From: Pecten maximus
Taxonomy: Eukaryota
DNA length: 64,000 nucleotides
Direction of reading: 5' to 3'
Assembly: GCF_902652985.1 (NCBI RefSeq)
Contig: NC_047016.1
Location: 21,824,001-21,888,000, forward strand
Part shown: piece by piece, positions 17,204 to 64,000 of the stretch
Numbering within the stretch: the stretch's first letter is position 1
Layout of the letters: every line of letters starts with the position of its first letter
Program-made: the position numbers and the translations under genes
Notes under the pieces: generated by a model
Told to the model about the DNA's origin: nothing
Seen by the model: the letters and a program-made list of their open reading frames with translations, nothing else
Database searches by the model: none

Positions 17204-20200
17204 ATGGAAAAAAAGGACAGCTATCGATCAAAGTGCTACTCCGGCTAAGAAGGGGAAATTTTCTTGCCCACATTGTGATAAATCCTTTGAACACAAAAAG
17301 TCTCTCACGAGACATGTTGCACAACATGGAGATATCAAATGGAAATGTGGAGTTTGTAACAAAGAGTTTGCGAGAAAAGATCGACTGACGAGAGAGACAT
17401 GAGAAGGTTCATGGAAAACCACTACATTTATGTTGCGGAAAATCGTTCTGGAGGGCTGATAAATACCGTGAACATTTAAAAGCGCACAACAGAAGTCAAC
17501 ACGGGGGAGCATTGGAAATAGCCGAACACGAAAACAAAGAGAATGTCCAACCGCCAAAGGATCAAGAAGTTAAGCGTAACACTGACAGATTAAATGCAGA
17601 GATAGAAAACAACTCGGCAAACCCGACCATACAAGTTAATCAGCCAACGGATAATGACGAATGCCCTGAGGAAGCACTTGGTGGATCCTTTAAAGTGGTC
17701 ACTATTCCGGCAGAGGGTAAAGCCAAATTAGACGTCACAACATCCCTTCACCAACACTACGACACCATAAAGAAGAAAATAGAGAGTGCAGTTATCCAGG
17801 GGGGTGTCAAATGGTACCTATCGATCCAAGTCCAATTTTCAAAGCCGAAGGGAGAGACCGTGGAAAGCGTTACACCTCATTTTCGTGGAAAGTGTCAAAT
17901 CACTCTGAAATCTATTGACATTGACGAACACATGCGGGAATCGATACGAAAAATCCAGAATTCGTTCACAGAGTATCAACGACAGGGTAGCAACTGGACA
18001 TTAGACAAGGTGCTCCAAATACAGATTCATTTTGCCCGATACAAGCCTCTCAAAGGGTCCAGTTACATACCACTACCGATCAAGCTTAGATCTAAGCATG
18101 CTATTATCAACATTCAAAACAAAGACAAAAAATGTTTCATGTGGTCAGTATTGGTTGCTTTGCACCCAAGGAAAAATCATCCAGAGCGTGCTTCGAAATA
18201 CATAGATTACCAAAGCGAACTCAATTTCACGGGTATTTCCTTCCCTGTCAAAGTTGCTGATGTCATTAAGTTCGAGGCAGGAAACAAGATCAGCATCAAC
18301 GTCTTAGGATACGAAAAAGGTTCGCTTTTCCCAATACATGTGACAAAGCAAAGGTTTGACCGACACGTAGATTTACTACTCATATCTGACGGACGAAAAT
18401 CTCACTACTGCTGGATCAAGAATATAGACCGGCTTCTGAGTGATCAGTACACATGTAAAAACCGCTATTTTCACTGCATGTATTGCATGCAAGGGTTCAC
18501 CAAGGAACGGATTCTCAACGACCATATCCCCTACTGTCGTGAGCACGGGACACAGAAAATTAAATTACCAACAGAAGAGGATAAATGGTTGTTCTATAAG
18601 GACGTGAGAAAACAATTAAAGGTGCCTTACATGATATATGCAGACTTCGAGTCATTTCAAGTTCCCATACATGGATGCGAGGTTGACCCGGAAAAATCAC
18701 ACACTGAGAAGACCACGCGACATATTCCTTCTAGTTTCGCCTACAAAGTAGTAGGTGTGACAAAGGAAACCTCCAAAAATCCCGTGGTTTATAGAGGACC
18801 AGGTGTGACTGAGAAATTTGTAGAATGTATGCTGAGGGGGCAGGAGGATATAGAACAAAGATTCAAAAATGTCGAACCGTTGGTCATGACAGGAAGTGAT
18901 TGGCACTCATTCAAAACAGCAGTAGACTGCCATATTTGTGGGAAGGAATTAGGGGACGACAGAGTGAAAGATCATTGTCACGTGGCGGGAGCATTCAGGG
19001 GAGCAGCTCACAATGACTGTAACATAAACTATAAGTTTACGGGACGTATTCCGGTCGTCTTCCACAATTTGAGAGGTTACGATTCCCATCTCATAATGCA
19101 AGCAATTGGAAAGATGTCTGATAAAGAAATAAAATGTATACCAAATAATATGGAGAAGTACATTTCTTTCTCCATGGGTTGTATGGACTTTATCGATAGT
19201 TTCCAGTTTATGGGAACGTCACTGGAAAAACTTATCGGGAATTCATCTGTGGAGGGTAAGGACAAGTTCTCACACATGACGCAACATTTTGGCGATGAGA
19301 AAATCGAACTCCTCCTTAAAAAAACAAGTGTACCCATACGACTACTTCGATGGTCCCCACAGGTTTCGAGAGACTAGTCTCCCTCCAAAGGAAGCTTTTC
19401 GTAGCAGTCTGACGGGAGAGGATGTATCGGAAGAAAAGTATCACCACGCTTGCAAAGTCTGGAAGGATTTCAGCATACAGAATCTTGGTGAATATTCGGA
19501 CATATACGTCTTGACAGATGTACTAGGTCTGGCCGATGTATTCGAAAACTTTCGAAATCTATGTCTGGAATCATATGGCCTCGATGCAGCTCATTTTTAC
19601 ACTGCTCCAGGTCTTGCATGGCAAGCAGCTCTAAAAATGACAAATGTCAGACTCAAACCGCTTACTGACAGCGACCAGCACTTGTTCATTGAGGAAGGCT
19701 TGAGGGGAGGCATATCCATGATTAGTCACCGATTTGCTGAGGCTAACAATCCCTACGTCCTAGGATATGACCCAATGAAACCAACAGAATACATCACCTA
19801 CTTGGATGCAAATAATTTGTATGGCTGGGCCATGTCTCAATACCTGCCGACTCATGGCTTCGCCTGGCTTACCGATAATGAAAAGGACATGCTTGATATC
19901 ACGACAGTTACTGATGATGCGACACGTGGATATGTACTGGAAATGGATCTAGAATATCCTACAGAACTCCACGATCTACACAACGAATACCCACTAGCAC
20001 CCGAACGGGTAACCGTGGGAAAAGATGAACTGACTGACCACAGTAAAACCTTATGGCGGAAGCTGTCGCACTGTGGAAATCTACATGATGGTGAAAACCT
20101 TCACGATTGTTTGGATCATTATAACTCAGCACAAAAACTCGTTCCAAACCTTAGAAATAAGGAAAAGTATGTAGTACACTACAGAAACTTAAAACAATAC

Positions 20201-21143
20201 CTCTCACTCGGAATGAAACTCACAAAAGTCCAGAGTGTTAACCTTCGAGCAGGCGCCATGGTTGAAGACTTATATAGATTACAACACGGAAAAAAGGAAA
20301 CAATCTCGAAACAATTTCGAGAAAGATTTCTATAAATTAATGAACAACAGCGTGTTTGGCAAGACAATGGAGAACTTAAGAAAGAGAATGGACGTCAAGC
20401 TTGTAAACAGTGAGAAGAAAGCAATGAAACTTACATGCAAACCCATATTCCACGAGTTCAGAATTTTCTCTGACGATTTAATCGGTGTTCACATGCTTAA
20501 GGCAAAGTTGTTTTTGAATCGACCAATCTACGTCGGATTCAGCATTCTTGACATCTCAAAAACATTGATGTATGATTTTCATTATAATTACATCAAGCAG
20601 AAATTTTGATCTAATGCCCGTCTTCTCTTTACCGATACCGACAGTCTAGCATATACCATTCAGACAGATGACTTCTACCAACATATGTTAGAGGACAGTG
20701 ATTTATTCGATATATCAGAGTTCAGGAAAGACAATCCACTCTACAGTATTAAAAATAAGAACGTACTGGGCAAAATGAAAGATGAGACTCATGGCGATGC
20801 GATCCATGCCTTTGTTGGGCTGAAATCAAAGATGTATGCATATACATACAATACAATGGAAGATATTGGTGGTACAGAAGTGATAACACATGTGGAATCA
20901 AAGAAGGCAAAAGGTATCAAAAAGTATGTTATTGAAAACCACACTCGTTTTGAGCAGTACAAGGAATGTCTTCTTAAAAACAGAATTATCATGTCTCACA
21001 TGAATCAGATCAGAAGATTCAAGCACCAACTCTATAACATATCGATGACCAAAATAGGCCTGTCACCATTTGACGACAAGCGATATCTGCTAGACGATGG
21101 GATTACTAGCTACGCTTACGGTCATTGGAGGATACAAAATTAG
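17204..21143 (+). pseudogene. Protein-primed DNA polymerase B (Polinton type) with N-terminal C2H2 zinc fingers and an endonuclease VII-like insert; frameshifted
   Basis: ORF pieces 17181-17402, 17512-19377, 19289-20335, 20235-20609, 20685-21143. Motifs: YADFES (exo I), CHICG..DHCH..G.FRGAAHNDCN (endonuclease VII-like), [44 protein letters not shown] (just after the stop at 20607-20609), GKMKDE, KAKG, FDDKRY. About four frameshifts plus one stop. Confidence 0.92.
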
Positions 21144-21480
21144 GAGAGTGAACTATCCTAGAAAGGTCTCATTTCAGGACCCCGCTGAATGGAAAAAGGT
21201 GTACAATCGACACAGATCACCCGAGTACCATTGTGTGGGTGGTAGATGACTCTCAGTAGTGTAAATAAATCATATTGTCCATTTTAAAGTAGGCTCTATG
21301 TACAGGCAGACACAAGATGGGTCCCTGACTTGTGTACTGCCTTATTGACAGAGATTATAAATATCGATTGTTACAATGTGTCGAATTATATTTTTACCCA
21401 TAATGCACTGCCCGAAAGAGTATAAATAGACCTAAAGTCTGAAATTTTGTCATTTCATACCTGGACACCGAGGAGTAAAC

Positions 21481-22990
21481 ATGTATAAAGTTCAATGTTG
21501 TGACTGCCGAAGATGGTTTTCCAGAATAGATGTAATGAAAAGACATCAGAGAAACGTACATGGTTATCTATCAACACCACTTCAAAAAGACAGCCAGCCA
21601 GCGCCGCCGCCGCCGCCGCAGGAGGGCAGTCATGCGTATCCGCCGCCACAGGAGGGCAGTCATGCGTATCCGCCGCAGCCGCCGCCGGAGGGCAGTCAGC
21701 AGAAGCAGCGGGACTTTGTTTTTAAACATCCCTTTACTGCAAATGTATCGGGACCCACATCATGTGGAAAGACTTATTTTGTCAAGACTTTATTACAAAA
21801 TTGTTTGTCAAAGATATCGCCAGCTCCACAAAGGATTTTGTGGCTCTACAAACGCTGGCAACCTCTATATGATATCATCAGGTCAACGGTTGTACCAAAG
21901 GTGGAATTTATTCAGGGGATACCACTTGATTTAGATCAGGACTCGTTCATAAACTCTAGCATTAGAAACCTTGTAATACTTGACGACCTAATGTCTACAG
22001 CATTTAAGGATCCGGGGATCAATGAGTTGTTTACAGAAGGGAGTCATCACAGAAACCTGTCCATCGTTGCCATCAACCAAAATTTATATTATAACAAGGA
22101 CCCTACTCAGAGACGTAACTGTCATTACTTGGTTTTGTTTAACAATCCAGTGGATAAACAACAGGTCATGACTTTAGCCAGACAAATGTACCCTGAAAAT
22201 GTTCAACACCTGATGAGCCATTTCAAGGAAGCTACCAGGAAACCCTATGGATACCTTCTCGTCGATTTGAAACCCACTACACTTGAATCTCTGCGCTTGC
22301 GCAGTCATGTCTTCGCTCACGAACCTATAAAAGGGGACATAGAACAGACGTTCGATCATTTTGATAGCAGCAGTCGTAGTGAACGGACGTATTTCCGACA
22401 GCAACAAGAAAATCCTGAACATCCTCACCACTTTACCGAAGATATTCCACAGCAGCCCCGAGAATCAGACCAAATGTCTGCCTGTGACGATTGCGGTATC
22501 ATGTTCCAAAACATGCACGATTTACAGAGACACTTGAAAACCTGGTGTCCAGAAAATGATTCTAGGAAAAGGAAACGAGAATCAATAGAGGAAGAAGATG
22601 GGCCTCAGCCAAAAAGGTGGATCTCATATGAAGAGTCCGACGAGGAAAGTGGTGAAAGTGAAGAAAATGAAGTTGTCTGATGACGAAGCACAGAAAAAAG
22701 CGAACGAGAAGATGAAATTGTCTGACATGGAGCAATTTTACCACAATTATAAAGCCATTATCCAGTACATTCTTCAGCTACGAAATGGTATGATCCACGA
22801 AAAGATCATGGATGATGTCACTGAATTCATAGACGATGGATATGGGAGTCGTAAAGCAATCAAGATGGCACTTAAAAAGAATCGTCATGTTTTAGAAGAG
22901 TTGTGGGACCATGACTCCGAAGATGATGAATCGAACGTTGACTCCGAGGATGAGGAATCGGACGATGACTCCGAAGCAGATGAAAACTGA
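21481..22990 (+). CDS. Polinton A32/FtsK-like packaging ATPase with C2H2-like motifs and acidic tail (ORF 21481-22680, probably continuing by frameshift into 22598-22990)
   Basis: Walker A GPTSCGKT, Walker B LVILDDLM, LFTEGSHHRNLS, KPYGYLLVD. N-terminal CCDCRRWF..MKRHQRNVH, Pro-rich PPPQEGSHAY repeats, C-terminal CDDCG..LQRH motif. Confidence 0.85.
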
Positions 22991-23049
22991 AATATATAAG
23001 GTTTGTTGTTCAAATCTTCATTTCAACGTCTAGCACTTGACGAGGAAAG

Positions 23050-24158
23050 ATGCCTTCCTGGGAGGATTATCTAAGAGATATTTATTTTAACCCTGCAAAT
23101 GCGGGGAGTTTCTCCGGACCCGACAAATTGTATAGATATGTACGGAAAGACGGAAAATACGTCATCAGCAAATACAAAATAAGAAAATGGTTACAACGCC
23201 AAGAGCCATACAGTCTTCAGGGATCGCTCCGACGTCCATTCAAGCGAAACAAAATCATAGTGACGGGTATCGACGACCAATGGTCGGCTGATCTCATGGA
23301 CATGGTCAAATTCAAGAGTGAAAACGATGGTTATTCCTATGTACTCGTTGTCATAGATGTCTTCTCTAAGTATTTGTGGATGAGACCTCTAAAAGACAAG
23401 AAAGGTGCATCTGTAGCAAAAGCGCTACAGGATATTTTATACGAGGGGAGACAGCCGGGCCGGATACGTACCGATAAGGGCCAAGAATTTCGATCGAAAG
23501 AGGTGAATACACTCATGGATGGATATGGCATACAGCATTTATATGCCCAAAACGACACCAAAGCCGCCGTAGCCGAGCGTGTCATCAAAACCATAAAATC
23601 TAGACTGTACAGGTATTTCACGCACAGAAGAAACTACGAATACGTTAAGAAATTACAAACGTTTGCCGACAGCTATAATCAAACGTATCACCGGACGATC
23701 GGTATGCCCCCCACAAATGTGTCTAAAGATAAGGAGACGTCTATCTGGTGGAGAATGTATTGGCCGAAAAAACAACCAGTCTTGCCAAAAACGAAGAAGG
23801 TTCGTAAACCTTTCAAGTTCAAAGTTGGAGATAAAGTGAGGTTGTCCCATTTGAGAAACCTTTTCTCCCGAGAATATGACCAAAAATGGACGGGGAGATA
23901 TTCACCATTTCTCAAAAGATACTTCGTGGAGGCTTACCAGTGTATAGAGTTAAAGACTTTGATGGAGACGAGATCAAAGGAACCTTCTACCAGTCCGAAC
24001 TACAGAAAATAGATGTTAGGGACGATGATATGTGGAAGGTTGAGACCATTCTGAAAACCAGAGAAAAAGGTCGAAACAAAAAAAACTACGTGAAATGGCT
24101 ACACTGGCCGAAGAAATTCAACTCCTGGATACGTGCGTCTGATGTAACCGATTTGTAG
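23050..24158 (+). pseudogene. Retroviral-like (rve, DDE) integrase with C-terminal chromodomain; one frameshift near 23895
   Basis: WSADLMD, VIDVFSKY, IRTDKGQEF, AERVIKTIK, YNQTYHRTIGMPP, FKVGDKVR. The frameshifted tail reads GTFYQSELQ..VETILK..YVKWLHWPKKFNSWI (chromodomain). Confidence 0.9.
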
Positions 24159-31500: not shown

Positions 31501-32239
31501 ATCATTTTTAATGAAACTGATCTCGAATCTTTAATTTTATTCGACACAGTCTGCAAAAATAATAATTTAAAAAAAAAAAACCGTTATTGATTTTGATTTC
31601 TTGTTTTGCTAAATCTTCACTTAAGCAATGATACATGTAGGAATATCTTCTTGTTTCAGGCTGTTAGGAAATAAAACCGCTGTATCAGCCAATTAAAAGC
31701 GACGCTACAGATGGTGACGTCATATTTTACATTAATTATTGACCAAATGAAAACGCTTGTTATAGGCAAGATTAAATTGTATACACTTTGAAACACTTAG
31801 AAAATTTAACTTCACGGGACATGTTTTCACTACAGCAAATTATAACAAATCATACAAACAATAACTTGTGTGGAATGTTTTTTAATGCAGATACAGTAAA
31901 GATGAGTATCAGATATCCTGTTTCTATAATTCTGTCAAATCTATGGACATTCATGTACTTACAATGTGCTTGTACACGTATACTTTTTAACATTTTGATA
32001 TCGATATGGGGTATTGACTCGTAGGTAAAATACACGTTTATGTAGACATGTACTATTGTACTTGTCACTTCCAGCTACTCAAAGGACTGTATTCCATACA
32101 TTTACTGTGACCAGTATACAATGTATATACGGACCACTGATTAGAATGACCATGTTCGGTTGCAGGATGAAAAAAAAGAAACTAATCTTTAATGTGAAAT
32201 GGTGAATCACAGATACGACACCTGAAATGAACTTATCAG

Positions 32240-34060
32240 AGCTACCGAGAGACTGTCCCACACAGCTACCGAGAGACTGTCCCACAGAGCTACCGAGAGG
32301 CTGTCTCACAGAGCTACAGAGAGGCTGTCTCATAGAGCTATCGAGAGGCTGTCCCACAGAGCTACCGAGAGCCTGTCCCATAGAGCTATCGAGAGGCTGT
32401 CTCACAGAGTTACAGAGAGGCTGTCTCACAAAGTCACCGAGAGGCTGTCTCACAGAGCTACAGAGAGGCTGTCCCACACAGCTACAGAGAGGCTGTCTCA
32501 CAGAGCTACCGAGAGCCTGTCCCATAGAGCTATCGAGAGGCTGTCTCACAGAGTTACAGAGAGGCTGTCTCACAAAGTCACCGAGAGGCTGTCTCACAGA
32601 GCTACCGAGAGGCTGTCTCACACAGCTACAGAGAGGCTGTCTCACAGAGCTACAGAGAGGCTGTCTCACACAGCTACAGAGAGGCTGTCCCACAGAGCTA
32701 CAGAGAGGCTGTCTCACACAGCTACCGAGAGGCTGTCTCACACAGCTACAGAGAGGCTGTCCCACAGAGCTACCGAGAGGCTGTCTCACAGAGTCACCGA
32801 GAGGCTGTCTCACACAGCTACAGAGAGGCTGTCCCACAGAGCTACAGAGAGGCTGTCTCACACAGCTATCGAGAGGCTGTCTCACACAGCTACAGAGAGG
32901 CTGTCCCACAGAGCTACAGAGAGGCTGTCTCACAGAGCTACCGAGAGGCTGTCTCACAGAGTCACCGAGAGGCTGTCTCACAAAGTCACCGAGAGGCTGT
33001 CTCACACAGCTACCGAGAGGCTGTCTCACACAGCTACAGAGAGGCTGTCCCACAGAGCTACCGAGAGGCTGTCTCACAGAGTCACCGAGAGGCTGTCTCA
33101 CAGAGCTACAGAGAGGCTGTCCCACAGAGCTATCGAGAGGCTATCTCACAGAGTCACCGAGAGGCTGTCTCACAGAGTCACCGAGAGGCTGTCCCACAGA
33201 GCTATTGAGAGGCTGTCCCACAGAGCTACCGAGAGGCTGTCTCACAGAGCTACAGAGAGGCTGTCCCACAGAGCTATCGAGAGGCTATCTCACAGAGTCA
33301 CCGAGAGGCTGTCCCACAGAGCTATTGAGAGGCTGTCCCACAGAGTCACCGAGAGGCTGTCTCACAGAGCTACAGAGAGGCTGTCTCGCACAGCTACAGA
33401 GAGGCTGTCCCACAGAGCTATCGAGAGGCTATCTCACAGAGTCACCGAGAGGCTGTCTCACAGAGTCACCGAGAGGCTGTCTCACAGAGCTACAGAGAGG
33501 CTGTCTCGCACAGCTACAGAGAGGCTGTCCCACAGAGCTACCGAGAGGCTGTCCCACAGATCTACCGAGAGGCTGTCTCATAGAGCTATCGAGAGGCTGT
33601 CTCACAGAGCTACCGAGAGGCTGTCTCACAGAGCTACAGAGAGGTTGTCTCACACAGCTACCGAGAGGCTGTCTCACAGAGCTACCGAGAGCCTGTCCCA
33701 CAGAGCTATCGAGAGGCTGTCTCACACAGCTACAGAGAGGCTGTCTCACAGAGCTACCGAGAGGCTGTCCCACAGAGCTACAGAGAGGCTGTCTCACAGA
33801 GCTACAGAGAGGCTGTCTCACAGAGCTATCGAGAGGCTGTCCCACAGAGCTATCGAGAGGCTGTCCCACAGAGCTATCGAGAGGCTGTCTCACAGAGCTA
33901 CCGAGAGGCTGTCTCACAGAGCTACAGAGAGGCTGTCTCACAGAGCTACAGAGAGGCTGTCTCACAGAGCTATCGAGAGGCTGTCCCACAGAGCTATCGA
34001 GAGGCTGTCCCACAGAGATATCGAGAGGCTGTCCCACAGAGCTACCGAGGGCTGTCTCAC
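32240..34060. repeat. 24-bp minisatellite, ~76 copies
   Basis: Unit cacagagctaccgagaggctgtct with recurring variants. It produces spurious ORFs on both strands. Confidence 0.97.
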
Positions 34061-34456
34061 ATAAAATTGTTAGCTTTGTTCTTGCGCTGCTGTCCTTTCT
34101 TTTTCTCGACCCCCATCACGTTGTTAAGTTGGTTAACCATAGCGCGTCGGCGCCTCTCTAGGTACTCCATTTGGTCCTCATCTATTATCTCCTCGACCTC
34201 CTCCTCAAAGTTGGGGTTATTTACGATGTTGCGCCCCTTTGTCGCAATCAAGAAGCGCCTGGCGTTGGCGTTGGCGAGCCCCTCCCCGTCTCGCGTATTC
34301 AGGTAACTGAGATAAAGCGCCATCTTCTTTTTCTGGTCCGCAAATTTATCAATTTCATCTGCGATATCGTCCACTACATCCGAATTTGGATTCGGGTCCT
34401 CTTCTTTTGATTTCACAGGCTCGGCACTCACTTCTTCCGGGGCAACTTTCTTCTTT
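34061..34456 (-). CDS. Internal coding exon of an uncharacterised, charged protein (probable last exon 32221->~32182)
   Basis: Open frame KKKVAPEEVSAEPVKSKEEDPNPNSDVVDDIADEIDKF...ANNF between acceptor ttactttatag and donor gtgaga, with GC content above the flanks. A phase-compatible downstream exon (ttcatttcag|G TGT CGT...) adds MCRICDSPFHIKD*. Upstream exons are uncertain. Confidence 0.6.
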
Positions 34457-49955: not shown

Positions 49956-50559
49956 CACAGGTCCTAGCCTCGTCTGTCAATACACCCAATATATAATCAA
50001 GGTCAATAACTCGATCGGCATAGATAACCCACCTAATTTCAGGAAAATTGTAATTGTAGACAAACCATCGAAGATGTGCCGCTGGTAATGGTCTCAATCG
50101 ACAGACAAATGTCCCCCCTTTAATTTGGTATATAATTCACTATATATATAGTCATAGAACTATCACTAGACGTCACAAAACATCGAAAATTAGTCAGATT
50201 TTATTTAGTCGGACACTCATCTGTCCAGCGAATAACACGAAATGTCTCTAGAGAGTAGCTTCAACAGTACCGCATGTCAGCACTCCAGTCTCTAAACGAT
50301 GAAACTTAGGCAGGAAACAAACTTACTTGCACATGTGTTCCTATCTAAAAATTACCCTGTTGCTCGCCTCTGGCTTTTGTTGATAACGCATCGCTGATTT
50401 TATGCCTGAAGCCGCCATGTTTTCCGCTGTGTAAGAAGTTGTTATCTCAACGCTGATTGGTTCGTTATTTTCAGGTAATTCGACCTTCACATTCGCTAAT
50501 TCTCTCGAAACTCTCGGGGTTTTTCATATCACAATCGCTAAACGGAAATCGTATCCGAA
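49956..50559 (+). repeat. Left TIR (604 bp)
   Basis: Reverse complement of 60463-61066. Confidence 0.95.
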
Positions 50560-51629
50560 CAATGTAATTGGCGGACTTTTCGAATGGTGTTATTTAGCGG
50601 AATTTTTTTAGCAGACGAACTTTAAGGATGGCAGTTGTCACTTGGTAATTCTTAATTATTTATGGAAACCATTATATCATAGGCATGAGACAGTTAAGAA
50701 TTTTCAGATATTAATCATGAGTTAAAAATTATATTACAGACAAAAAATATATGACTATATGTCTTTGATTGATTACATATAGATGCATCATTACTATGTT
50801 ACTTAATAGCAAACTTAATTAAAGGGCCGATGGGAATTGTTTAGACCTATGACAGGCCATAGCTATCATAGTGATTTTTTATGTATATTTTAAATTTTTA
50901 GTAATTAACTGGTGTTATTTATTTGATAATAGCACAGCATGTTTTATGCAAATTATGGTTCAGCAGTTTAATTTTATCTGAACTTAAAATTGAAAACAAG
51001 ATCTGTCGGAGGACCGCATCTTTTAGTTAGACTCATGAACATGAGGAGATAGTCTATTCCCTCATGGGGACCATAATACCAAATATAAACACAACTAGAA
51101 AATAGTCTGCAAGATATGTAAGCCGCAATGTGAAAACAAGTCATGTGACAACCATTGTTGAACATGTACAGATCATGTGACTTATGAAGATTGTCCAGCT
51201 GATTTATGTGACACACCATAAGCTTGATCAACATATATACAGTACTAGTTATGAGACATCCATTGATCAACAGCTTACACCAAAACTGTAACATTTGAAA
51301 CAATATATATAATATTATTGCAATGAGAAATAAAACCCATCCAATGATAAAATTCAACAAGAGCAGGAGGTACATTATGAAACTGTAAATACCAGCAGCA
51401 ATACAGAACAAATAATAAAATGGAAAAAAAATTAAAGATTGATTGAATGTTCAATATGAAAATATACATAGTGTTAGTGTAAATCAGACATATTACATAC
51501 CATTTAAGAAGTATGACACTAGCTACACCATATTGCATCTCTAGATCTATTAAACACAAGAAGTGAGTGTACATGCATGTGAAACTATCTACTTACAATG
51601 AGGAAGTATACCACAGCTCTTTCATTACA

Positions 51630-52260
51630 CACTGAAGAAATGTGGCACTGTTCCTCCATTACACACATTATAAGTGTGGCACTGTCCCTCCATTACACAC
51701 ACTGAAGAAGTGTGGCACTGTTCCTCCATTACACACATTATAAGTGTGGCACTGTTCCTCCATTACACACATTATAAGTGTGGCACTGTCCCTCCATTAC
51801 ACACACTGAAGAAGTGTGGCACTGTTCCTCCATTACACACATTATAAGTGTGGCACTGTCCCTCCATTACACACACTAGAAGTGTGGCACTGTTCCTCCA
51901 TTACACACACTGAAGAAGCGTGGCACTGTTCCTCCATTACACACACTAGAAGTGTGTTCCTCCATTACACACACTAGAAGTGTGGCACTGTTCCTCCATT
52001 ACACACACTGAAGAAGTGTGGCACTGTTCCTCCATTACACACATTATAAGTGTGGCACTGTTCCTCCATTACACACATTATAAGTGTGGCACTGTCCCTC
52101 CATTACACACACTGAAGAAGTGTGGCACTGTTCCTCCATTACACACACTAGAAGTGTGGCACTGTTCCTCCATTACACACACTAGAAGTGTGATACTGTT
52201 CCTTTATTACACACACTAGAAGTGTGTTCCTCCATTACACACACTGAGAAAGTGTGACAC
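51630..52260. repeat. ~33-36-bp minisatellite inside the P element (~18 copies)
   Basis: Unit aagtgtggcactgttcctccattacacac(attat/actgaag/actag). Confidence 0.93.
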
Positions 52261-52355
52261 TATATATATATATATATCACACACAATTTGGAATCCAGAA
52301 AAATATGTTTGATTTGTTATGAAATAATGGTAGTTTTAACATTTCTAAATCTAAT

Positions 52356-54225
52356 TTATTGACAGTCATTACAGAAAAACCTTACTCCTTCTTGTCTTGC
52401 ATTGTCCCACTTTTTTTTTGAACGAAGCCCTGCACAGTTCCTGTGTAGCCATTTAGAGCAGCTTTCACAGTATATCCAATACAATACACTACCAACTTTA
52501 TTGCAAACTTTGCAGACTTCCTCTTCTTCAGGATCTTTTTGAAGCATTGCTTCACCCTCTTCAGTCGAGGTACCTTTAGGTTCTTTCTGAGTGTCCTCAA
52601 AAGAATCTGCTGCAGAACTTGGTCCTGGTTGAGGTTCTGAAAGAGTAGTTGTCTCTGCCATCTTGGATTCTGTGTCATGGTGAATGACGTTTGGATTTGG
52701 CATGGCATTACTGGCGAGTATCCTTGCTTTCAAGTCCTGCATTAATTTTGCTTTTGTATAAACCCTTGATACCTTCAGAGAGTATGCCTTGCATAATGTT
52801 TGGAGGTTGGTCTTGGTAAATGACTTCAAAACATCTTTCTGTTGGAGAAGTAAACCTTTCAGTAAATTGTGTGACATATCTTTACCTATGGAGTTATCTT
52901 TACTGATACTATCAAAGCTGACTGTTCCCTGAATATCACTTTGTTTTGATTTCTTGATCAAAATTTGCTTTCTGTGAGCTAATGTTTTCTCCACTGAAAA
53001 TGCTTGAAGCAGGTCTTTCCTAAATTGATTAAGCATCACCATGACAAACTTCTCAACAATATCCTTGTAAATACACTCGGTCACAGAGACTTCCAATGTG
53101 AGTTTATTGAGAATGTCTTCAACGACTGATGAACCCACATCACATGTATTTTCATACAAAGAAAAACTTTTCATAGGCACTGTCTTGACAACTTTCAGAA
53201 ACTGTTCGTAAAGTTGAATATTCCCCATGATTACATTAAAGCATTGACTGTGGAGATGTTGACCGTGTTGATGGAGATGTTGATCAGTCAGGTTTGTAAG
53301 ACAATGTTCACACAGCTTCATGAAAAATAAGAATAGTTCATCTCTGATCTGAGTTAACCCCCTGCTTACATTTTGTTTCCTGATGACATCAACCAATGTT
53401 TCAGGAAGAGCAGAATGTTTTTCCAACACAACCTCATTCTCCCTTAAAGCATCAAGTATGTTGATTGCCATTGTTGATTCCTCATACTGTTGCTGGTCTT
53501 CAATGCTGACTTTGGTTGCTCTTGTCTTCTGAAGCTGCAGATTGCGATATCTGACCTTACTGATACAATACCCACCAACATAACGGATCCTCGCTTTTGA
53601 TGCACTGGTCACAAACCTCTGGTAAGTGGATTTCTTGGTTGTCTGGAAGAGGTCAACCTTCTCCTGAAGCAAGAACTTCCTTACCTCCACTGCCAACTTG
53701 TAGCAGATGTGGGCTTGGGCATCAGAATGTATGGGCAGGTCTTGAAACAGTATCATGGTAGTCAAGAGGTATTCCTGGCTTGTTTGATGCCGATTGCATT
53801 TTTCATAAAAATGACAAAGAGCCTCAGACTTTACTGGACCAGAGGCAGTGACGTTGAGGTCTTCCATAAATGCAGACAAAACTAAGAATTGTTTTTTGCA
53901 GAAGTCTGCAACCCTCTCAACATGAAACTTCAGCAAATGGTCAATCAATTCATTTGATTCCGTTTGTATAGCTGTGGCTTCATGCTTTGATCGCATTGTT
54001 TGAAGGAGAGCCCCTGGGTCAAATGAAGCCGGCAAAGTATACTCAGATAGTTCATCAGTTGAGAATACACTGTCAGATACAATGATTTTGTTGAAGTCAT
54101 CATCAAAAGTATCTTCATCTTCCTCTTCTGTTTCTGCTTCACCTTCACATCCGAGATTCCCATCAACAATGAAATCGTCGTCGTCATCTGGCCCAAATAT
54201 GGTCTGCCAATCCATGGACACCTGT
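52356..54225 (-). CDS. PHD-finger-containing exon; predicted last exon of the PIF1-PHD fusion gene
   Basis: 621-aa open frame preceded by acceptor aatttttcag. C-terminal C4HC3 PHD: CKVC...WIYCESCSKWLHRNCAGL...FFCNDC. Acidic N-terminal part. Confidence 0.85.
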
Positions 54226-54878
54226 CTGAAAAATTAAAAACAATAAAAATTGGTGATAATTATTATAAATGTTACAGTAAATGTCTGACTCCCCCAGGCC
54301 TACCAGCTGAACATTTTCCATTAAAATCTCTTAACAAAAATGCATTAAATCCTTGTTTATGGATAATGTATGATGAAAGAAATGACCTTGCACCATTTTG
54401 AAGGTTACAGGGGTATATATGTTTAAAAAAAATAACATTTCTATATATAAACCAAAAGTTATGTTTAAGTTCATACAAACTTTTATCATTTCTTTATTCA
54501 ACTTCAATATCAACAAACTTTATTAACACAGAAAGAAAGTCAATAGGATAGCCTATCTAAGTCTTCTCCTTAGTAACAACAGGTGGTAAGAAATACAGAC
54601 AAATATAATGTATATGTACACATTGATATGACAAATTAACTTACATATATATATATACAATTGAAATCAAATATATCGGGGATAGATAACACATTATATA
54701 CAGTCTCGAATATGTCATGACGTTTATTTGTGTGTATATATATTTGTGTGAAGGAGTTAAGGTGTGTATGATATAAATATAAAGTAAACATAAAAAGACC
54801 AACAGTACAAATGTGTTTACAGTTTGTAGGTTATTATTAAAGGCTTATTAACTAAATTGCTTATCTTTCTAATTTCAG

Positions 54879-57237
54879 GATGTTTTCAAGATTGATAGAA
54901 GAAGGCACTGTATCGGCAAATGTTTTGTTTGAGACATATCGCTTGGAAATAACGGATCTTGGCTATAAAGAAACTGATGTTACATCTCCACAACTGTTTT
55001 CTCAATATGTTACACAGTTGTACCCCAATGTTAAGAAAACAAGACAACATATTGGATCTTTGAAACAAACTATTTATATTGGACTATCATTATCTACCAA
55101 CTCTTTCCAAAGGGATAGAAAAATAACACCAGAAGAACTAGTAACTAACCTACCACTTGGTTTTATATTGACTAAAAAAACAGAACAAAAAATTCAATGG
55201 TCATATCCAACACCTCACATTTCAAATGGAAACACTGTCTATAAAGATATAACTTTCAATAAAGACGGAAGCTGGCAGATGGTCATTGGGACGAAAGACA
55301 TTGATTTGAAAAGCATTGGAATAGATAATAGTTTCATTGGTGATTTAGATTTGGTCTGTAAACAGGTGACTTCAATTAGACTGTGTGAAGGAATCGCTAT
55401 TGACAAAAATATAGTATGTAGTCGTTTCCACATCCTTGATGCATGGCAAGACAGTGATGGCAAATGCGAGAAACATTTAAGATCAATTAACTGTGTCAAA
55501 GTAATTGGATTCATTCACAGATCTCAAGTGTGTAGAGTATGCCAAAAAATGACATTTGGGTCACAAACAGAGAATACCACACAAGAAAATTCAAGTCCTC
55601 AACTTACTCTTACTCTTAGGGAGCAATTTCAAAAGTTAATTCCAAATGCACCAGAAAACATGCTTGAACTTTTAATAAGTCAAGCCAATAACTGTGGAAA
55701 GGATGCCCGTGGTAGAAGATGGAGTCAAGTATTGATTTCAATTTGCCTTCAACTCTTCACAAGAAGTCCAAGTGGTATCTGTATGTTAAGAAACAGTGGC
55801 ATATTAATGCTTCCATCACCTTCCCTACTGATTTTGTATAAAAACAATGTGAAGCATGAAGTAGGGTTCAAAGAGGAGATATTTCATTGGATGTATAGTG
55901 AGGCAAAGCGGCTAAATATTTCTTCCGCTGGTATGATTGGTGGTGTTATACTAGACGAGATGGCTATACAGAGTGACATTCAGATAACCAAGAATGGTGA
56001 CGTCGTGGAACTCCTTGGATTTACTGACCTAGGTCAAGAAGGAAACATGTGTGAGGTCCTCAAATCAGGCAAGAAAGAAAAGACATTAGGAACTCATGTA
56101 CTTCAGCTGATTTTTCTGGGTGTAACAGGATTTCGCTTCCCTTTTGCACATTTTTTATCAACGACAGTACAAGCAGCACAGCTTCATGTTTTATTTTGGG
56201 ATGCTGTGGATTGGCTAGGAATGTATGGGTTCCAAGTTGCCTATACTTGCATGGATGGAGCACCATGCAACAGATCCTTCATGCATATAAACTTGCAGCA
56301 TCGCCTGGTTGAGGAATCTGTATGTGTTCCTAGTCCATGTAGATTCAATACATCGGTTATTTTTATGATGGATTTCTCTCATTCTATCAAGAAAATCAGA
56401 AATAATATCATGAAAAGTGGAGTTTCAAAGGAGTCAACAAGATTATTGACACTTCAAGATGGTACCCAAATTCAATGGCAGATGTGGATAGAGTGCTACA
56501 GATGGGACCAACAAAATGGCCTCTCTCTCCACAGAAGTCTAACAAATGAACACATCTTTCCAAGTTCACAAATGAAAATGAGAAACCACCTCGCTGAAGA
56601 AGTGCTGAACAATGAAATGCTTCATCTCTTTCTTCAGTACCAAGCATCTCTTGGCAAGAAAGGAGAAGTGTTGAACGGGGCTATTCAGCTTATTCGACAA
56701 ACGTCTAAGCTGATAAGTATATTTCGGGATAGAAGACCAATTCAAACCAACGATGATGAGAGACTTAAAGTACTGCAAGAAGCTCTAAGCTGGTTTATTG
56801 ACTGGAAATCTACAATAACATCAGATTCGTCATTGTCAAAACAGGTCAAGGCACATATGCTAATGTCTTCACAATGTATAGAAGATTTGCAGGCATGTGT
56901 AATTGGATTTGTAGAACTTTGTTCTAAGCTTACATCAGGCAGTGACTCAATATCTATAACACCATGTTTAGTCAATTCAGATGCTATAGAAAATGAGTTT
57001 AATCAGCAGAGATCAACATTCAATGGTGCAAACACAAACCCAAATGCCCTTCAATACCGAAGAACACTGAATAATATCATACTTGGTCAAAATATTGTAT
57101 CTACGAAAGCAAATGCTGGCAAAAACAATGCTGCTTTATCATACGCGTTCCAAAATCCAAATCCCTTGAAGACCCAAAAAAGGAAAATCCAGGACAAGCC
57201 AGCTGATTCACAGAAAATTAAAATCATCAGAATGTAA
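54879..57237 (+). CDS. P-element/THAP9-family DDE transposase (785-aa exon; short upstream exon likely)
   Basis: Uninterrupted ORF with LPSPSLL, ILDEMAI (D1), CMDGAPCN (D2), MDFSHSIKKIRNN (DxxH..K.IRN), QMKMRNHLA, NSDAIENEFNQQRS..GANTNPNALQY (E). Preceded by acceptor ctaatttcag. Confidence 0.9.
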
Positions 57238-57602
57238 TTATTTTGATGTGTGAATGGTGTATATTTGACGATTTTGTATCATCAGATGTGCAGTGCAACA
57301 CTAACGTGAAATACTTTTTTTTAATAATTTTTCTGAAGTCCTGTTAACAGCCATGGTCATTTCAGTACTCGCCTGGTTTGGAGATGCAGGAATGCCAGAG
57401 TACCCAGAGAAAAACCACTGAACATTGAACATTGAACCAAGTATGTGTTGAACTCACAACCCAAAGATGTATGGCTAGTGATAAAGTGTCGGGATATTTC
57501 AATGGACCACAAAGGCCCAAAAATAATGTGAAATTAATATGGTAGTGTGTATCAGTGACAGTGTAATGGATGTAAATATAATATCTATGGCAATTTGAAT
57601 AC

Positions 57603-60199
57603 CTGATAGCATTACAGCAGTGTAGACTGTCATCAAGTTCTCGAGACGGTGTGTCAATGAAGGTCTGGACGATATCTGGCTGCTGAATACAAACACTCGG
57701 ATTGAAATTCAGGATACGAAGCCCAGCCGCACTCCTAACTCTTCCCATGGCAACGCCTAGCTGACCAGCTTTAAATATGTTGCGACAGTCAACTTCTACT
57801 CTGAAATAAGAATTTTTATAAAGTGTGTAAAGTTTAACTGACTATTATATCATATTCAATGATGTTTACATTGTACTTATAACAAGCACTTTATAGCAGG
57901 TGCATGTAGTCCAAAACATTATAATACAGACATTTTTCTACGCAATGTTTAGCAACATTATCTTGGAAAAATATCAATTTAATCCAACATAAATCAACTA
58001 ATAGTTACAAATATATTTACTTAACATATATATGCATGACACCATGAGACAAGTCAAATGAAATTAATCAAATTATTCTATTTCATTCAAGTGAGTACTT
58101 AAAGAAAACTACAAGATTTATGATGTAAAAATAAAAAAATTAGTTACAGAAAAAAAAAGATTAGCATTGTTATGTAATACATGCCTACATATGTTTATTT
58201 ATATGTATATATATGTAAGCAATAAGTATACATGTGTGAATGAATATGAGCCTTTGTGAATGTTGTGAATGAATATGAGCCTTTGTGAATGTATGTATGT
58301 TTGTTTGTATGTATGTAATATTTTCTCCTTATATCTGATTGAACTCTCTTTATTATTACTTCGAAATCCTTTTCTTTATCTTCTTCTTTATCCTTTCTAC
58401 GTTTTATTCTAATAAAAAACTTCTCCTAATATAGATCAATTACATCCTTCTGCATTTAATCTTTCTTGTGTATTGCAATACTATATAATACATATCTTTC
58501 TATTTCTCATTGTTTCTTCTCTTTTACAACAATCAGATAACCAGATTTCTTGGAAAGGACCACTATAGGCTTAGCCTGTTGTCTAATCCATTTATTTATA
58601 TAACTTTATTTAAATGTATAAACACTAATTACTTGATATAAAATATTTTGAAATGAAATGAGATCACTTTTTTTTCCTTTTCTTTAGAACATATAATACC
58701 TATCCAGAGTCATTCCTTGGGCCTTGTGGATACTCAGGGCAAAGGCAAGCTTCAATGGGTACTGCATCCTTTCTGCCACATTCTTTCCAATGACAGGACT
58801 AAATACTAAATGAACATAAATACATGCAATGTATGTGTAATCAATATCATTATAATGTATGTACATTGTAATCATTATAAGTACTGTGAACTGTGTCATC
58901 AATACATTTGGGCTTTCAGTAATATTTGTTTCCCAAACTAGATTCAATAGAACTTGGGCATTGTTGTATTGACAGATTGTGTGTAAATAGATTGGGCTAT
59001 TTATAAGTAAAACAGAATAACTGAGTAGTTATTTAATTATGGATAATCTATATATACATGATAACATACATTATTTTGTAATGATTAATTATTAATAATT
59101 AAGCAATTATGATCATTCTATCATCAAATTAAAACCCATGTATACAAGTGTTTTAGTACATATGAATAACTGTTATCAAGATCATATGAATTTCATTTGA
59201 CATCTCAACTTTAAGCATCTTATATTTACCTGTGAACTTAATTTTTGTTATCCTATGTACACCTAATGATCCGAAGTCCACTACAGGTCCATCTTTCCCC
59301 AGTGAAACAATATATCCCTGCAATCCATTGTAAAGAACTTTGGAAAAATTGCGAAGGAGCACAACTGGACAACCTTCCTTCAACCAAAGTTTTTGTGGAG
59401 CCAGTATCTTTGAGAGATGTTTTTTATCCCCAGTATCAACTGCAGAGTACTCAATCAACTCTCCCCTCCAGTTCAAAATACGCCTTCTGTTATAGTCATC
59501 CACAAGGTTATTAGTAGCAAACAACTTAACAGAAGGAGGCCCTGTTGGTAATGGCCTCTCCATAGAGTTAATAAGGGTTAATGATTCTTCTGTCAGTTCA
59601 ACCCCTTCACTGACCTCTTGGATGGCTTTAATAAGGGTCTGGTCTTGTTGCCTGATTATGTCACATAATATAACACGATGAGGAACAGCAGTTTGAAATA
59701 GTTCTGACTGAAAGCAGAAGTTACCTTCATCATTGTATTGTACATTAGGAACAGGTGGGAGTTGTCTGAAATCGCCACAGAGTATAAGTTGTATACCACC
59801 AAAGATAGCATCTGGATTTTTCAGGCTGCATACTTCCTCCAGTTGCTGAAAAAGCTTATCTGAAAGCATGCTTATTTCATCTATTATTAGTGTGTCAGCC
59901 TTCATCAATCGTTCTAAAGTGTCTCTGTGTTTGGGGGTTTCCTTGATCAATGTAGCAATTTCTTTGGATGAATATCGACCGTCATCTATGCCAGCCCATC
60001 TGTGAATTGTCATCGCATTGCTAAAATTTGCACAAGCTATCCCTGTTGTACACGTGATATGAACACTTTTGTCTGCTTTACGGAGTCCGTTTTCTATTTC
60101 TGAAATCAGAAAGGACTTGCCAGTTCCCGCTGATCCACCTATGTATAAATTGTGGACTGCGATGGCAATATCATAGGCTTCCTTCTGTTTTAAATTCAT
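57603..60199 (-). CDS. PIF1-family (SF1B) DNA helicase, coding exons 60199-59230, 58805-58700, 57800-57603
   Basis: GSAGTGKS (I), TCTTGIAC (Ia), TIHRWAGI, LIIDEISML (II), FGGIQLILCGDFRQLPPV (III), IRQQD (IV), LKEGCPVVLLRN, QYPLKLAFALSIHKAQGMTLD (V), GQLGVAMGRVRS (VI-like). Splice sites are GT-AG and phase-consistent. Confidence 0.92.
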
Positions 60200-60462
60200 T
60201 TTTGAGAACAGTGTGCATGTCACAGTACAAATCTATATACATTGTATTTAGATCACGGACAGTAGATGCACCGTGCTACTAAAAGGTGTTTTTACGATGC
60301 ATCTTACCTTTTCCACTGTAAGGATGCTAACATTTTGTACTTTACATATACAAAGTCATGATTTATGACAAATTATTTCGTATCTGAAGTTGATAAACCT
60401 GTAGAGTGATGGGAAATACAAATCGCACATGCTGCTCTGCTTCTGCTTGTTTGTTGTTATAA

Positions 60463-61066
60463 TTCGGATACGATTTCCGTTTAGCGATTGTGATATGAAA
60501 AACCCCGAGAGTTTCGAGAGAATTAGCGAATGTGAAGGTCGAATTACCTGAAAATAACGAACCAATCAGCGTTGAGATAACAACTTCTTACACAGCGGAA
60601 AACATGGCGGCTTCAGGCATAAAATCAGCGATGCGTTATCAACAAAAGCCAGAGGCGAGCAACAGGGTAATTTTTAGATAGGAACACATGTGCAAGTAAG
60701 TTTGTTTCCTGCCTAAGTTTCATCGTTTAGAGACTGGAGTGCTGACATGCGGTACTGTTGAAGCTACTCTCTAGAGACATTTCGTGTTATTCGCTGGACA
60801 GATGAGTGTCCGACTAAATAAAATCTGACTAATTTTCGATGTTTTGTGACGTCTAGTGATAGTTCTATGACTATATATATAGTGAATTATATACCAAATT
60901 AAAGGGGGGACATTTGTCTGTCGATTGAGACCATTACCAGCGGCACATCTTCGATGGTTTGTCTACAATTACAATTTTCCTGAAATTAGGTGGGTTATCT
61001 ATGCCGATCGAGTTATTGACCTTGATTATATATTGGGTGTATTGACAGACGAGGCTAGGACCTGTG
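60463..61066 (-). repeat. Right TIR (604 bp)
   Basis: Reverse complement of 49956-50559. Confidence 0.95.
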
Positions 61067-61239
61067 GGCCTACAGTTAATTAAATACAATATTTATAATA
61101 TATCCAGTATATGAGTAAAAAGACACTTAACATCTACATCAATTTCACGGGTTTTAGGTTTTTGAAAAATTGTCGAATGTCAACATAAATTTCGTGAGAG
61201 TTTATATAGATCTTTTATACCATCAATGCATGTTGCAAG

Positions 61240-61540
61240 TTTTGTGTTTACGTCCAATGCGTTTCCTCCTTTTTCTGACTGTGTCTACCCGCGGTTGGAA
61301 TATGGTTGACTACCTCGCATTCTGAATAACAATATATCACATGTAAAGTGCGCAAGGCCGAACTTACGTTCCCCTTACAATATACAATCTGACAGATGGA
61401 GTACATACTGAAGTAATAGTTGGTTGCCGCAAAGTGCACATGCTTTTAGAGCATCGGCCAAAGTCCCCAACTCCACTATGCGTCGGCCCGTGCGCCATGA
61501 AGTGTCCTCTTGTTCTACATTGCCATAAATTGGAGATGTG
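61240..61540 (-). pseudogene. Fragment of another DNA-transposon protein (Mutator-like/Kolobok-type N-terminal Cys-rich region)
   Basis: Minus strand SWRTGRRIVELGTLADALKACALCGNQL...LSDC*..ERKFGLA..C..SECEVVNHIPTAGRH, with stop and frameshift. The family assignment is from memory of the motif only. Confidence 0.45.
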
Positions 61541-61668
61541 CTAACCTCTTCCTGACTTGATATAAATTGTCTCCGCCGAGACTGTAACTAACGTTATATG
61601 GTCGTCACACATTGGCACAAATGTGATACATCGGCGCTGTCCTTGTTTTCAATGGACCATCTTTAATC

Positions 61669-61768
61669 ACAGGTGCCTGACTCGTTTTATAAAATAATAA
61701 CATATAGAGTACATATAAATGAGAGTACTCTATATGTTATTATTTTATAAAACGAGTCAGGCACCTGT
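61669..61768. repeat. Perfect foldback: 44-bp arms, 12-nt loop
   Basis: acaggtgcctgactcgttttataaaataataacatatagagtac-atataaatgaga-gtactctatatgttattattttataaaacgagtcaggcacctgt. Confidence 0.9.
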
Positions 61769-62576
61769 TTTTTTGCTTTAATTTATGTTCTCACTTCATT
61801 GAAAGCATAAGCCTTACCTAGTCTTTTAGTTTTACAAAACTGACCCCTTTACCTCTTGACCGTATCGTGCTGTAGGCCTAAACATTTATCTCCCAGCTGA
61901 CTTGAAAATGTATAGTTTTCACTTGTTAACAATGTATCTAACAAATTGATTTTTAATTTATTTACATGATCAAACTAGGTATATTTTCAACATTCCACAT
62001 GCTACTGTCGCTCTAGTATTTTTGTAAATGATTAACAAATAATTGTTAATATGTTTTGATTTTTAATTAGACGTGTTTGTGTGAGTGAAGGAAATATTGA
62101 CAAAAAAGTTACGATGTTTGTATTGCTGTCAAAATGAATGTTTTTGGTTTCTTCATGTTTTATGTGAGGGCCATATGTAAGATTAGTACTGTACTAAATA
62201 TGTAACCCTCGTGAAATAAAGTTTTATTATTATTATTATTATAAAACCAGATGTAACTATTCGTGAATATAATCAAGGGCCCGGATCGCCGGACGCCGGA
62301 TCGCCGGATCGCCGGACTCATGTCTGTGACGTCACAGAAGGGTCGGTCTACCTTAAGTATAATAGAATAATATATAATCTTAGTGACGCTAGATTGTATC
62401 CATGCGCGAAAATCTATTCACATTCCAATGCGAAAATTAACCAATAAAATTATCCAAAAATATTTACATCTCTCCCTAATTCTTCAGCTTAGTAAACTCT
62501 GACTGTGTTGAAATTAGCGTAAAACAGTGAAAAGGGTTAAGCGGATTAATAAGCGTGGGAAAGTTTAACATAATCA

Positions 62577-64000
62577 TGACGTCGTATGTTTGTGACGTTA
62601 CCGGAACGTCAATTAGACGTCGCCATTTTCATAGGAGTGATCAACGCAATTTTAGCGTTTTCTCCTGTTACCCGATTGTAATGATATTTGGTGTAGTTCA
62701 ACCATAAGCTCTACACAGTCAGAGTTATCGCCCTTGTGAGAGCACATGTGATTCATTCGAATAAAATGGCTGCTGGAACACACACGTAATGTCTTAGTGT
62801 CGTTCCTCTTAATGGAAAGCTACGGTACGATCAACCAAGACCTGATCTACACGATAGCATTATTACATGGTGTCTGAATAGTCTGAACTTAAGAAATGGC
62901 ATTATCGGGGATCCAAACACCCGAATTAGACTTGAATTCTACAAATCTGCCGGAGGCATGGCGGAAGTTTCGGCAGCACGCTGGACTGATTTTTGATGGA
63001 CCCTTGAAAGGCAAGGATGAAGCAACGAAGTGCACTTATCTATTATTATGGGTTGGACAAAAAGGTATCGATATTTACACTACATGGAACCTGTCCGAGG
63101 AAGACGGCAAGAAAATTAAATCGTACGACGATGGCTTTGCAAAACATGTACAGCCGAAGGCTAACCCAGTATTTGCACGATACAAATTTAATAACATTGT
63201 TCAGGATACGTCAACGTTTGACGAGTTTGTAACAAAACTAAAGCTAGCTGTGAAGGACTGCTCGTACACAAATGCAGATGAGATGGTACGTGATCGTATT
63301 GTCTTCGGTGTTAGTTCACAGAAAGCTAGAGAAAAACTTATCAACGAAGGGAAAGACTTAACTATGGACAAGGCAGTACAAATTGGACAGAGTCACGATT
63401 ACGAACAAAAGCAGATGAGCACAATGACGATGGGAGCACAGGCACAAGAAATACACGCAATTTCACACAGAACAAAGGGACATTACTCTAGTCGCGAAAG
63501 TGAACACAGACGGGGTGAAAGAAAATATTAACGTCAACAACATGGAACAGACAAACAGTACGTGAATAATAACACATTCAGTGACAAAAACAACACAAAA
63601 GAGTGTGGGAGCTGTGGAAGGGAACATAAACCCTCTGACGTATGTCAAGCAAAAGGCAGAAGATGCAAAAAGTGCAACAAATGGAACCATTTTGCTGTGA
63701 AGTGTAGATCTAGAGACATACATCAAATAACAGGCGGTGATGAATCGGAGTCTGAGTAATCAGACAGTTTTTTCATTGATACTATAAGTAATAACACTCA
63801 AAAGCACAACAATAATCAAGCCCTGGTCTCTATCACTACAGGCCCCAACTCCTGCCCAGTTACATTTAAACTTGATACAGGTGCCCAGGTAAATGTGTTG
63901 CCCAAGAGTGTATTTCATAAAATATGCCCAAATATGACCCTGTCTAAGCCCGAAAAACACTTGTCGTCTTATGGAGGCGCACCCATTGAAACACTAGGTC
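62577..64000 (+). mobile_element. 5' part of a Gypsy/Ty3 LTR retrotransposon (Mag-like), truncated by the window end
   Basis: Putative LTR TG..CA ~62577-62867 with AATAAA, followed immediately by TGGTGTC (PBS-like), then gag and protease. Confidence 0.85.
62896..64000 (+). pseudogene. gag-protease of the Gypsy element with two in-frame stops
   Basis: NLPEAWRKF..YLLLWVG..FARYKF..RDRIVFGV gag core, knuckles CGSCGREH..C / CKKCNKWNHFAVKC, aspartic protease FKLDTGAQVNVLP. TAA at 63529-63531 and 63757-63759 in the same frame. Confidence 0.85.

Follow-up and report, generated by a model that had tools for sequence, protein, structure and literature searches.

A window of 64,000 nucleotides (nt) from the scallop Pecten maximus (NCBI RefSeq assembly GCF_902652985.1, contig NC_047016.1, positions 21,824,001 to 21,888,000 of the forward strand; "the window" hereafter means this whole stretch) contains an 11-kb segment that most probably represents one young, low-copy and autonomous DNA transposon of the P superfamily carrying two genes (Table 1). 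One encodes a transposase of the DDE type, while the other, on the opposite strand, encodes a PIF1-type helicase that continues into a C-terminal PHD finger. It can be stated with great confidence that the helicase and PHD parts form a single spliced gene, and the transposase gene lies within its third intron.

Three large open reading frames (ORFs) are present in this part of the window, namely 59153-60223 on the minus strand, with the PIF1 and 2B domains, 54880-57237 on the plus strand, with a P-type N-terminal RNase H domain, and 52356-54221 on the minus strand, which ends in the PHD finger. An earlier note, made from the letters alone, had proposed that the first and the last belong to one gene of four exons and that the whole transposase exon lies antisense in an intron of 3.4 kb. 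When the reading frames were verified one exon at a time, the four borders and their phases proved exact. Indeed, each exon is open in frame, with entry phases of 0, 1, 2 and 2, and the exons add up to 3144 nt (1047 codons), the first in-frame stop being the TAA at 52356-52358. The introns, of 424, 899 and 3377 nt, follow the GT..AG rule throughout, with donors beginning gtaa, gtat and gtat and acceptors ending in ttag, tcag and tcag. The transposase ORF was likewise found where the note had placed it, entirely within 54226-57602 and on the other strand.

The union of the two minus-strand ORFs is borne out by several lines of evidence. The best match of the PHD exon is the RefSeq protein of LOC117315301 (P0001, 1048 amino acids (aa)), predicted in Pecten maximus on a paralogous copy of the locus (C17), which runs through the 57603->54225 junction (...CCNAI-R-QVSMDWQ...) and also shares both upstream junctions. 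In parallel, a contig from the read run X3 joins 57800 to 58700, thereby skipping 899 nt bounded by CT..AC on the plus strand, that is GT..AG on the minus strand, and corresponding exactly to intron 2. The homologue search suggested by the earlier note, for which the database protein P0001 and not the joined exons of the window served as query, found fused relatives in other bivalves, a gastropod and a sea cucumber. Annotated fusions occur in Argopecten irradians, Mizuhopecten yessoensis, Saccostrea cucullata and Littorina saxatilis, and additionally in Mercenaria, Mytilus, Pinctada, Haliotis and the sea cucumber Holothuria leucospilota. The contig L025 (3626 nt) spans both the helicase and the PHD part and lacks all three introns, and the contig L032 (3316 nt) holds one ORF of 1031 aa from the helicase start through the PHD finger; whether these derive from RNA or from intron-less DNA, the ORF is continuous in either case. 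In Holothuria, a single exon of 676 aa comprises the C-terminal half of the helicase, the linker, the helical domain and the PHD finger. Since L025, L032 and the Holothuria exon display the fused ORF directly, they provide support that is free of splice prediction.

The nested layout is also shared beyond Pecten. At the loci of Argopecten, Mizuhopecten, Saccostrea and Littorina, helicase exons 1-3 are followed by an antisense transposase ORF (38-53% identity) and then by the PHD exon, while in Holothuria the antisense transposase lies in a different, upstream intron. The fusion with an antisense intronic transposase is thus found in five other species (three bivalves, a gastropod and a sea cucumber), a recurrence of exon order and nested ORF that makes the layout more than chance. 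Two sequences attributed to bacteria, L031 (a contig of a "Sedimenticola sp." metagenome-assembled genome (MAG)) and P0122 (from a "Candidatus Thiodiazotropha" MAG), also carry the transposase and the PIF1 exons of the transposon; most likely they are host-clam DNA binned into symbiont MAGs.

Two further observations concern the last exon. P0001 leaves exon 4 after ...EEEVCK (window 52509) and its tail is translated from the 34-bp array at 51623-52261, giving an isoform without the PHD finger that could stem from alternative splicing or from an error of gene prediction. A contig from run X4, at a depth of about 25, agrees with the beginning of exon 4 within 54000-54147 and diverges past 54147 into unrelated sequence, and it may represent a related family member with another upstream exon.

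The transposase is encoded by a single exon. Its homologues are widespread in bivalves and include one from a gastropod; PF21787 is common to all of them, and the GTP-binding insertion domain PF21788 occurs in some. This second domain is precomputed for several close relatives and was not reported by the Pfam scan of the window's own transposase. The single sequence gave no match among solved structures, and the Drosophila P transposase structure was reached by profile alone: a profile of 12 homologues matched 6p5a_A over three colinear blocks, with an expectation value (E) of 1.9e-7. Within them lie the invariant residues D359 (DEM), D498 (D.SH.IKK.RN) and E704 (NSD.IEN.F), which align with the blocks DEM, D..H.IK..RN and N.D..E..F. 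Because the alignment stops at 564/569 of 6p5a chain A, with no more than about 40 basic residues beyond it, the scallop transposase is without the C-terminal helical domain that forms residues 617-734 of 6p5a chain B. At the other end, a profile search gave a weak match to an RFX-type winged helix (E 0.019), and the four invariant cysteines may form a zinc module of another kind. The homology of the transposase, together with target-site duplications of 7-8 bp, places the element in the P superfamily.

The borders of the element were set by locating its copies in the 918-Mb genome of Pecten maximus and aligning them. A search of this genome with the transposase ORF returned six near-identical copies on different chromosomes, with similarity spanning both neighbouring genes. 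At least six full copies of about 99% identity are present, those besides the window lying at C35, C1, C11, C4 and C17, each in unrelated flanks. The target-site duplications are distinct at each of seven insertions, being GGCCTAC here and ACGCAGAG, GTGTAGAT, GTTTGACC and others elsewhere. A further copy, at C5, is a 4.2-kb internally deleted derivative that keeps both ends and joins 51121 to 58065, a kind of deletion typical of P elements. A genome search with the terminal inverted repeats (TIRs) detected 14 ends at 99-100% identity along with older fragments at 80-93%. Thus, the situation implied by the earlier note, a gene playing host to a transposase by chance, is not supported, as both genes are cargo of a repeated transposon with TIRs at 49956-61066.

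The full copies differ from one another only in non-coding sequence, including a 166-bp deletion within intron 1 at C1 and C11 and an insertion within intron 2 at C35. Five of the six full copies have an undisrupted transposase ORF, and four of the five full copies outside the window preserve all four exons of the helicase-PHD gene together with the splice sites; substitutions among these young copies are too few for gauging selection. The element has probably been active recently and is probably still active today. The 34-bp motif of the subterminal array did not recur when looked for within the TIRs, and so cannot be called a transposase-binding site.

Some copies and flanks present features of their own. 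The C17 copy (L015/L022), with a total length of 15,981 bp, bears in intron 3, at the equivalent of window 54652/54653, a nested non-coding element of 4790 bp with perfect inverted ends (ACAGTACGAGG...) and a TA-rich insertion site, and the RefSeq model still splices over the enlarged intron. Immediately beyond the right end of the transposon in the window, a separate high-copy dispersed repeat (61067-62357, with dozens of copies of 96-99% identity genome-wide) begins exactly, and the transposon has apparently landed within or next to this repeat. The run X8, which carries another organism label (organism B), covers most of the element over 54000-59999 at 99% identity or more and at low, even depth; organism B could be of the same species or a sister species, it could be a hybrid, or the element could have been transferred recently.

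The protein encoded by the larger gene combines several modules. Exons 1-3 encode a complete set of PIF1-type motifs, with GTGKS, DEISM and GDFRQLPPV in exon 1, IHKAQG in exon 2 and GQLGVAMGR in exon 3, which assigns the protein to the PIF1 family of superfamily 1B (SF1B) helicases with a predicted helicase activity; its nearest relatives outside the family, as found with P0001, are cellular PIF1 proteins at 32-37% identity. The earlier note had read motif VI correctly and called it atypical, but the variant, in the form GQLGVA[MI][GS]R, is kept from scallops to the sea cucumber and is, on this comparison, a conserved family trait and no lesion. In exon 4, the PHD finger is the sole Pfam domain. 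An AlphaFold model of this exon, with a mean predicted local distance difference test score (pLDDT) of 76.7, is all-helical apart from the PHD finger, and when compared with representatives of all solved structures its top match was 6p5a_B (Z 9.3, root-mean-square deviation (rmsd) 2.9, 118/118 residues). When the helical domain was modelled in isolation (pLDDT 88.5, predicted template modelling score 0.83), 6p5a_B was the sole match above Z 8 (Z 9.9, the next being 6.5). The helical domain may therefore resemble the C-terminal domain of the P transposase, a structural match that is suggestive only, and that gains weight because the neighbouring transposase of the same superfamily is without exactly that domain. 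The C-terminus has the pattern and fold of a PHD finger, matching the Pygopus PHD in profile comparison (E 7e-7) and in structure (Z 7.5, rmsd 1.6). PHD fingers of the Pygopus and TAF3 types read methylated lysine 4 of histone H3 (H3K4), and that of exon 4 is thus a putative histone reader.

These features can be arranged into a tentative mechanism. The DDE transposase would cut and paste the element, accounting for excision and integration, while the helicase-PHD protein would act as its helper, docked through the module that resembles the C-terminal domain and guided by a PHD finger that reads chromatin. The helper could supply 5'-3' unwinding at the transposon ends, or else drive the long-tract repair synthesis that refills the 11-kb gap left by excision. 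P elements increase in number through synthesis-dependent repair that copies the sister chromatid into the gap left by excision, and long-tract break-induced DNA synthesis is known to be driven by PIF1; an element of 11 kb would benefit from a PIF1 of its own. According to this proposal, which we consider possible and rather less than even in likelihood, the element is a split P-type machine in which the C-terminal domain was handed to a second protein and coupled to PIF1 and PHD modules, so that transposition would be tied to unwinding, long-tract gap repair and chromatin choice. The intronic antisense nesting would itself be selected, given that the layout holds in two phyla though the intron used differs. 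Mutual regulation of the two genes by antisense transcription (collision, double-stranded RNA or Piwi-interacting RNA), as put forward in the earlier note, is possible, the sole point in its favour being the nested topology kept in two phyla.

Several observations weigh against parts of this picture and have to be considered together with the explanations that compete with it. As for the single gene, no Pecten read or contig was seen to span 57603->54225; coverage there is nearly nil (0 to about 25 over 54000-54399), so that this absence is uninformative. A contig from run X1 (57426-57786) passes the exon 3 donor unspliced. The PHD exon has an in-frame ATG 10 nt past its acceptor, and the 660 bp between this ATG and that of the transposase could contain a divergent promoter. 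Taken together, these points could fit three transcription units, namely a helicase-only gene reading through to a stop at 57362, the transposase, and a PHD protein that starts from the ATG at 54215 and shares its promoter with the transposase; the fused model would then be a prediction artefact or a minor isoform. We hold this to be improbable. Run X1 also covers introns 1 and 2, and is therefore DNA or pre-mRNA; indeed, the read runs are only guessed as RNA, and X1 and X8, which cover introns, are probably DNA. The read-through beyond the exon 3 donor yields an 80-codon tail that is argued to be intron because it consists mostly of the dispersed-repeat fragment of intron 3, and the residues that end exon 3 (CC...R) are conserved between species. 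Apparent stand-alone PHD proteins of 500-650 aa turned out to be ORFs of last exons, lying on short genomic contigs and directly preceded by an acceptor, and the fused ORFs of L025, L032 and Holothuria involve no prediction step. An old copy at C15 (91% identity), in which the exon 3 donor has changed to AT, is fragmented and decayed and hence uninformative. Far less credible still is the view that a cellular PIF1-PHD gene had its intron invaded by an unrelated transposon, with an accidental antisense pairing that perhaps became regulatory later. A transposase that is wholly intronic on the opposite strand is the usual look of such an insertion, but the TIRs and target-site duplications enclose both genes, every copy moves as one 11-kb unit, and the pairing has been kept at 35-53% transposase identity over six species and two phyla. 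Moreover, no second pair of inverted repeats bounding the transposase was found inside intron 3, and the transposase is accordingly not an insertion in its own right.

With regard to the division of labour between the two proteins, the likeness to 6p5a_B is structural only, and its Z of 9.9 lies under the safe level for helical matches. Foldseek searches with both models returned PHD fingers only and no 6p5a_B, the Pfam family Tnp_P_element_C gave no match on 20 helicase-PHD proteins at E up to 10 nor in a whole-genome search in which the controls gave none either, and a protein atlas search returned nothing. A THAP domain was not detected on the transposase by the Pfam scan. A prediction of the complex between transposase residues 240-785 and helicase-PHD residues 60-430 gave no verdict, which counts neither way, and the role of the helicase as helper is itself inferred. 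The gene could accordingly be captured passenger cargo with no part in transposition, for instance countering host silencing or having no function. Transposons do capture host genes, and the link between this gene and transposition is drawn from sequences and models, with the complex prediction adding nothing to it. We nevertheless regard such cargo as unlikely. The helicase-PHD ORFs have stayed intact at 26-57% identity from molluscs to an echinoderm and invariably accompany this lineage of transposases, an upkeep that argues for selection within the element, and the helical domain resembles exactly the domain that the transposase is without.

The lineage matters beyond this locus. P elements are a textbook cut-and-paste system and are thought to need just one protein of their own. 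This lineage, apparently active now in a commercially important scallop, in every case brings along a complete PIF1 helicase joined to a putative chromatin reader and perhaps also to the domain that the transposase itself is missing. It thereby provides a natural setting for asking how helicases contribute to DDE transposition, for example through gap repair. The fused protein is already public, annotated as "uncharacterized" or "PIF1", and the many genes so named in molluscs and sea cucumbers that have a C-terminal PHD finger are to be read as transposon genes and not as host helicases. In the literature, Repbase not covered, no description was found of a P-type transposon with a PIF1-PHD gene or with the nested layout.

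Table 1. Features of the transposon and its two genes (positions in the window)
Feature	Start	End	Strand	Description
Whole transposon	49956	61066		11,111 bp, termini CACAGG...CCTGTG; copies of the same element aligned in differing flanks
Left target-site duplication	49949	49955		GGCCTAC; same 7 bases at both ends
Left TIR	49956	50559	+	604 bp; inverted match to 60463-61066, 99.5-100%
Subterminal tandem array	51623	52261		34-bp unit, about 18 copies; copy number differs among element copies
Helicase-PHD gene, exon 4	52356	54225	-	1870 nt; acidic linker, helical domain, PHD finger, stop codon
PHD finger (C4HC3)	52362	52514	-	PF00628, E 4.5e-5; closest to Pygopus and TAF3 type
Helical domain	52989	53618	-	Modelled fold like P transposase C-terminal domain (6p5a_B residues 617-734; Z 9.3 and 9.9; suggestive)
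Helicase-PHD gene, intron 3	54226	57602	-	3377 nt; contains transposase gene
P-superfamily DDE transposase ORF	54880	57237	+	785 aa, single exon; PF21787, E 3.6e-12; D359, D498, E704 invariant
Dispersed-repeat fragment in intron 3	57312	57502		2553 candidate places, 75-79% identity; very high depth over 57200-57599
Helicase-PHD gene, exon 3	57603	57800	-	198 nt; motif VI and end of helicase domain
Helicase-PHD gene, exon 2	58700	58805	-	106 nt; helicase motif V
Helicase-PHD gene, exon 1	59230	60199	-	970 nt; N-terminal part of PIF1 (Walker A, Walker B, motif III, 2B domain); PF05970, E 1.4e-29; PF21530
Right TIR	60463	61066	-	604 bp; partner of 49956-50559
Right target-site duplication	61067	61073		GGCCTAC; matches left copy

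Elsewhere in the window, the plus strand has a run of large ORFs at 17512-24012 that resembles a Polinton/Maverick-like element; one of these ORFs matches poxvirus A32-type packaging ATPases and another a retroviral-type integrase core. On the same strand, an ORF of 644 aa at 32227-34161 lies in a GC-rich patch (54% GC) and gives five matches to Cornifin/SPRR-like proline-rich repeats, and an ORF of 211 aa at 62896-63531 gives a weak match to retrotransposon gag.

Among known systems, the Drosophila P element and human THAP9 share with the scallop element the RNase H-like DDE transposase with PF21787, colinear with 6p5a, the 7-8-bp duplications and the internally deleted derivatives; the PF21788 domain is present in some relatives of the scallop transposase. 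The P element differs in having TIRs of 31 bp as compared with 604 bp, whereas in the scallop element no THAP domain was detected by the Pfam scan, the transposase stops before the C-terminal domain, and a second, larger PIF1 helicase-PHD gene hosts the transposase in an intron. Galileo is a Drosophila element of the P superfamily with long inverted repeats (PMC3573991, PMC2775673). It thus resembles the scallop element in combining a P-type transposase with very long TIRs, but it encodes the transposase only, while the scallop element adds the helicase-PHD gene. The target duplications of Galileo are 7 bp.

A transposon-encoded helicase of the PIF1 family is also found in the Rep/Hel proteins of Helitrons and Helentrons. 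Helitrons are without TIRs and target duplications, whereas the scallop element has both, and an ORF and Pfam scan found no HUH Rep endonuclease domain in any of its ORFs; a Helitron identity was ruled out on these grounds. AcademH and PIF/Harbinger are cut-and-paste DDE elements that likewise have an accessory gene, which codes for a helicase in AcademH and for a Myb/MADF DNA-binding protein in Harbinger. Their transposases belong to other superfamilies, neither has the PHD module or the gene-within-intron layout, and the AcademH helicase is, to our knowledge, not a PIF1-type SF1B enzyme. Finally, ProtoRAG (RAG-like) transposons encode a RAG1-like transposase and a RAG2-like partner (PMC7204232). 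As in the scallop element, a DDE transposase is therefore paired with a second element-encoded protein, although the transposase is of another superfamily. The RAG2 of vertebrates ends in a PHD finger that reads trimethylated H3K4. In the scallop element, the partner is a helicase and not a kelch-repeat protein, and the two genes are nested and not merely convergent.

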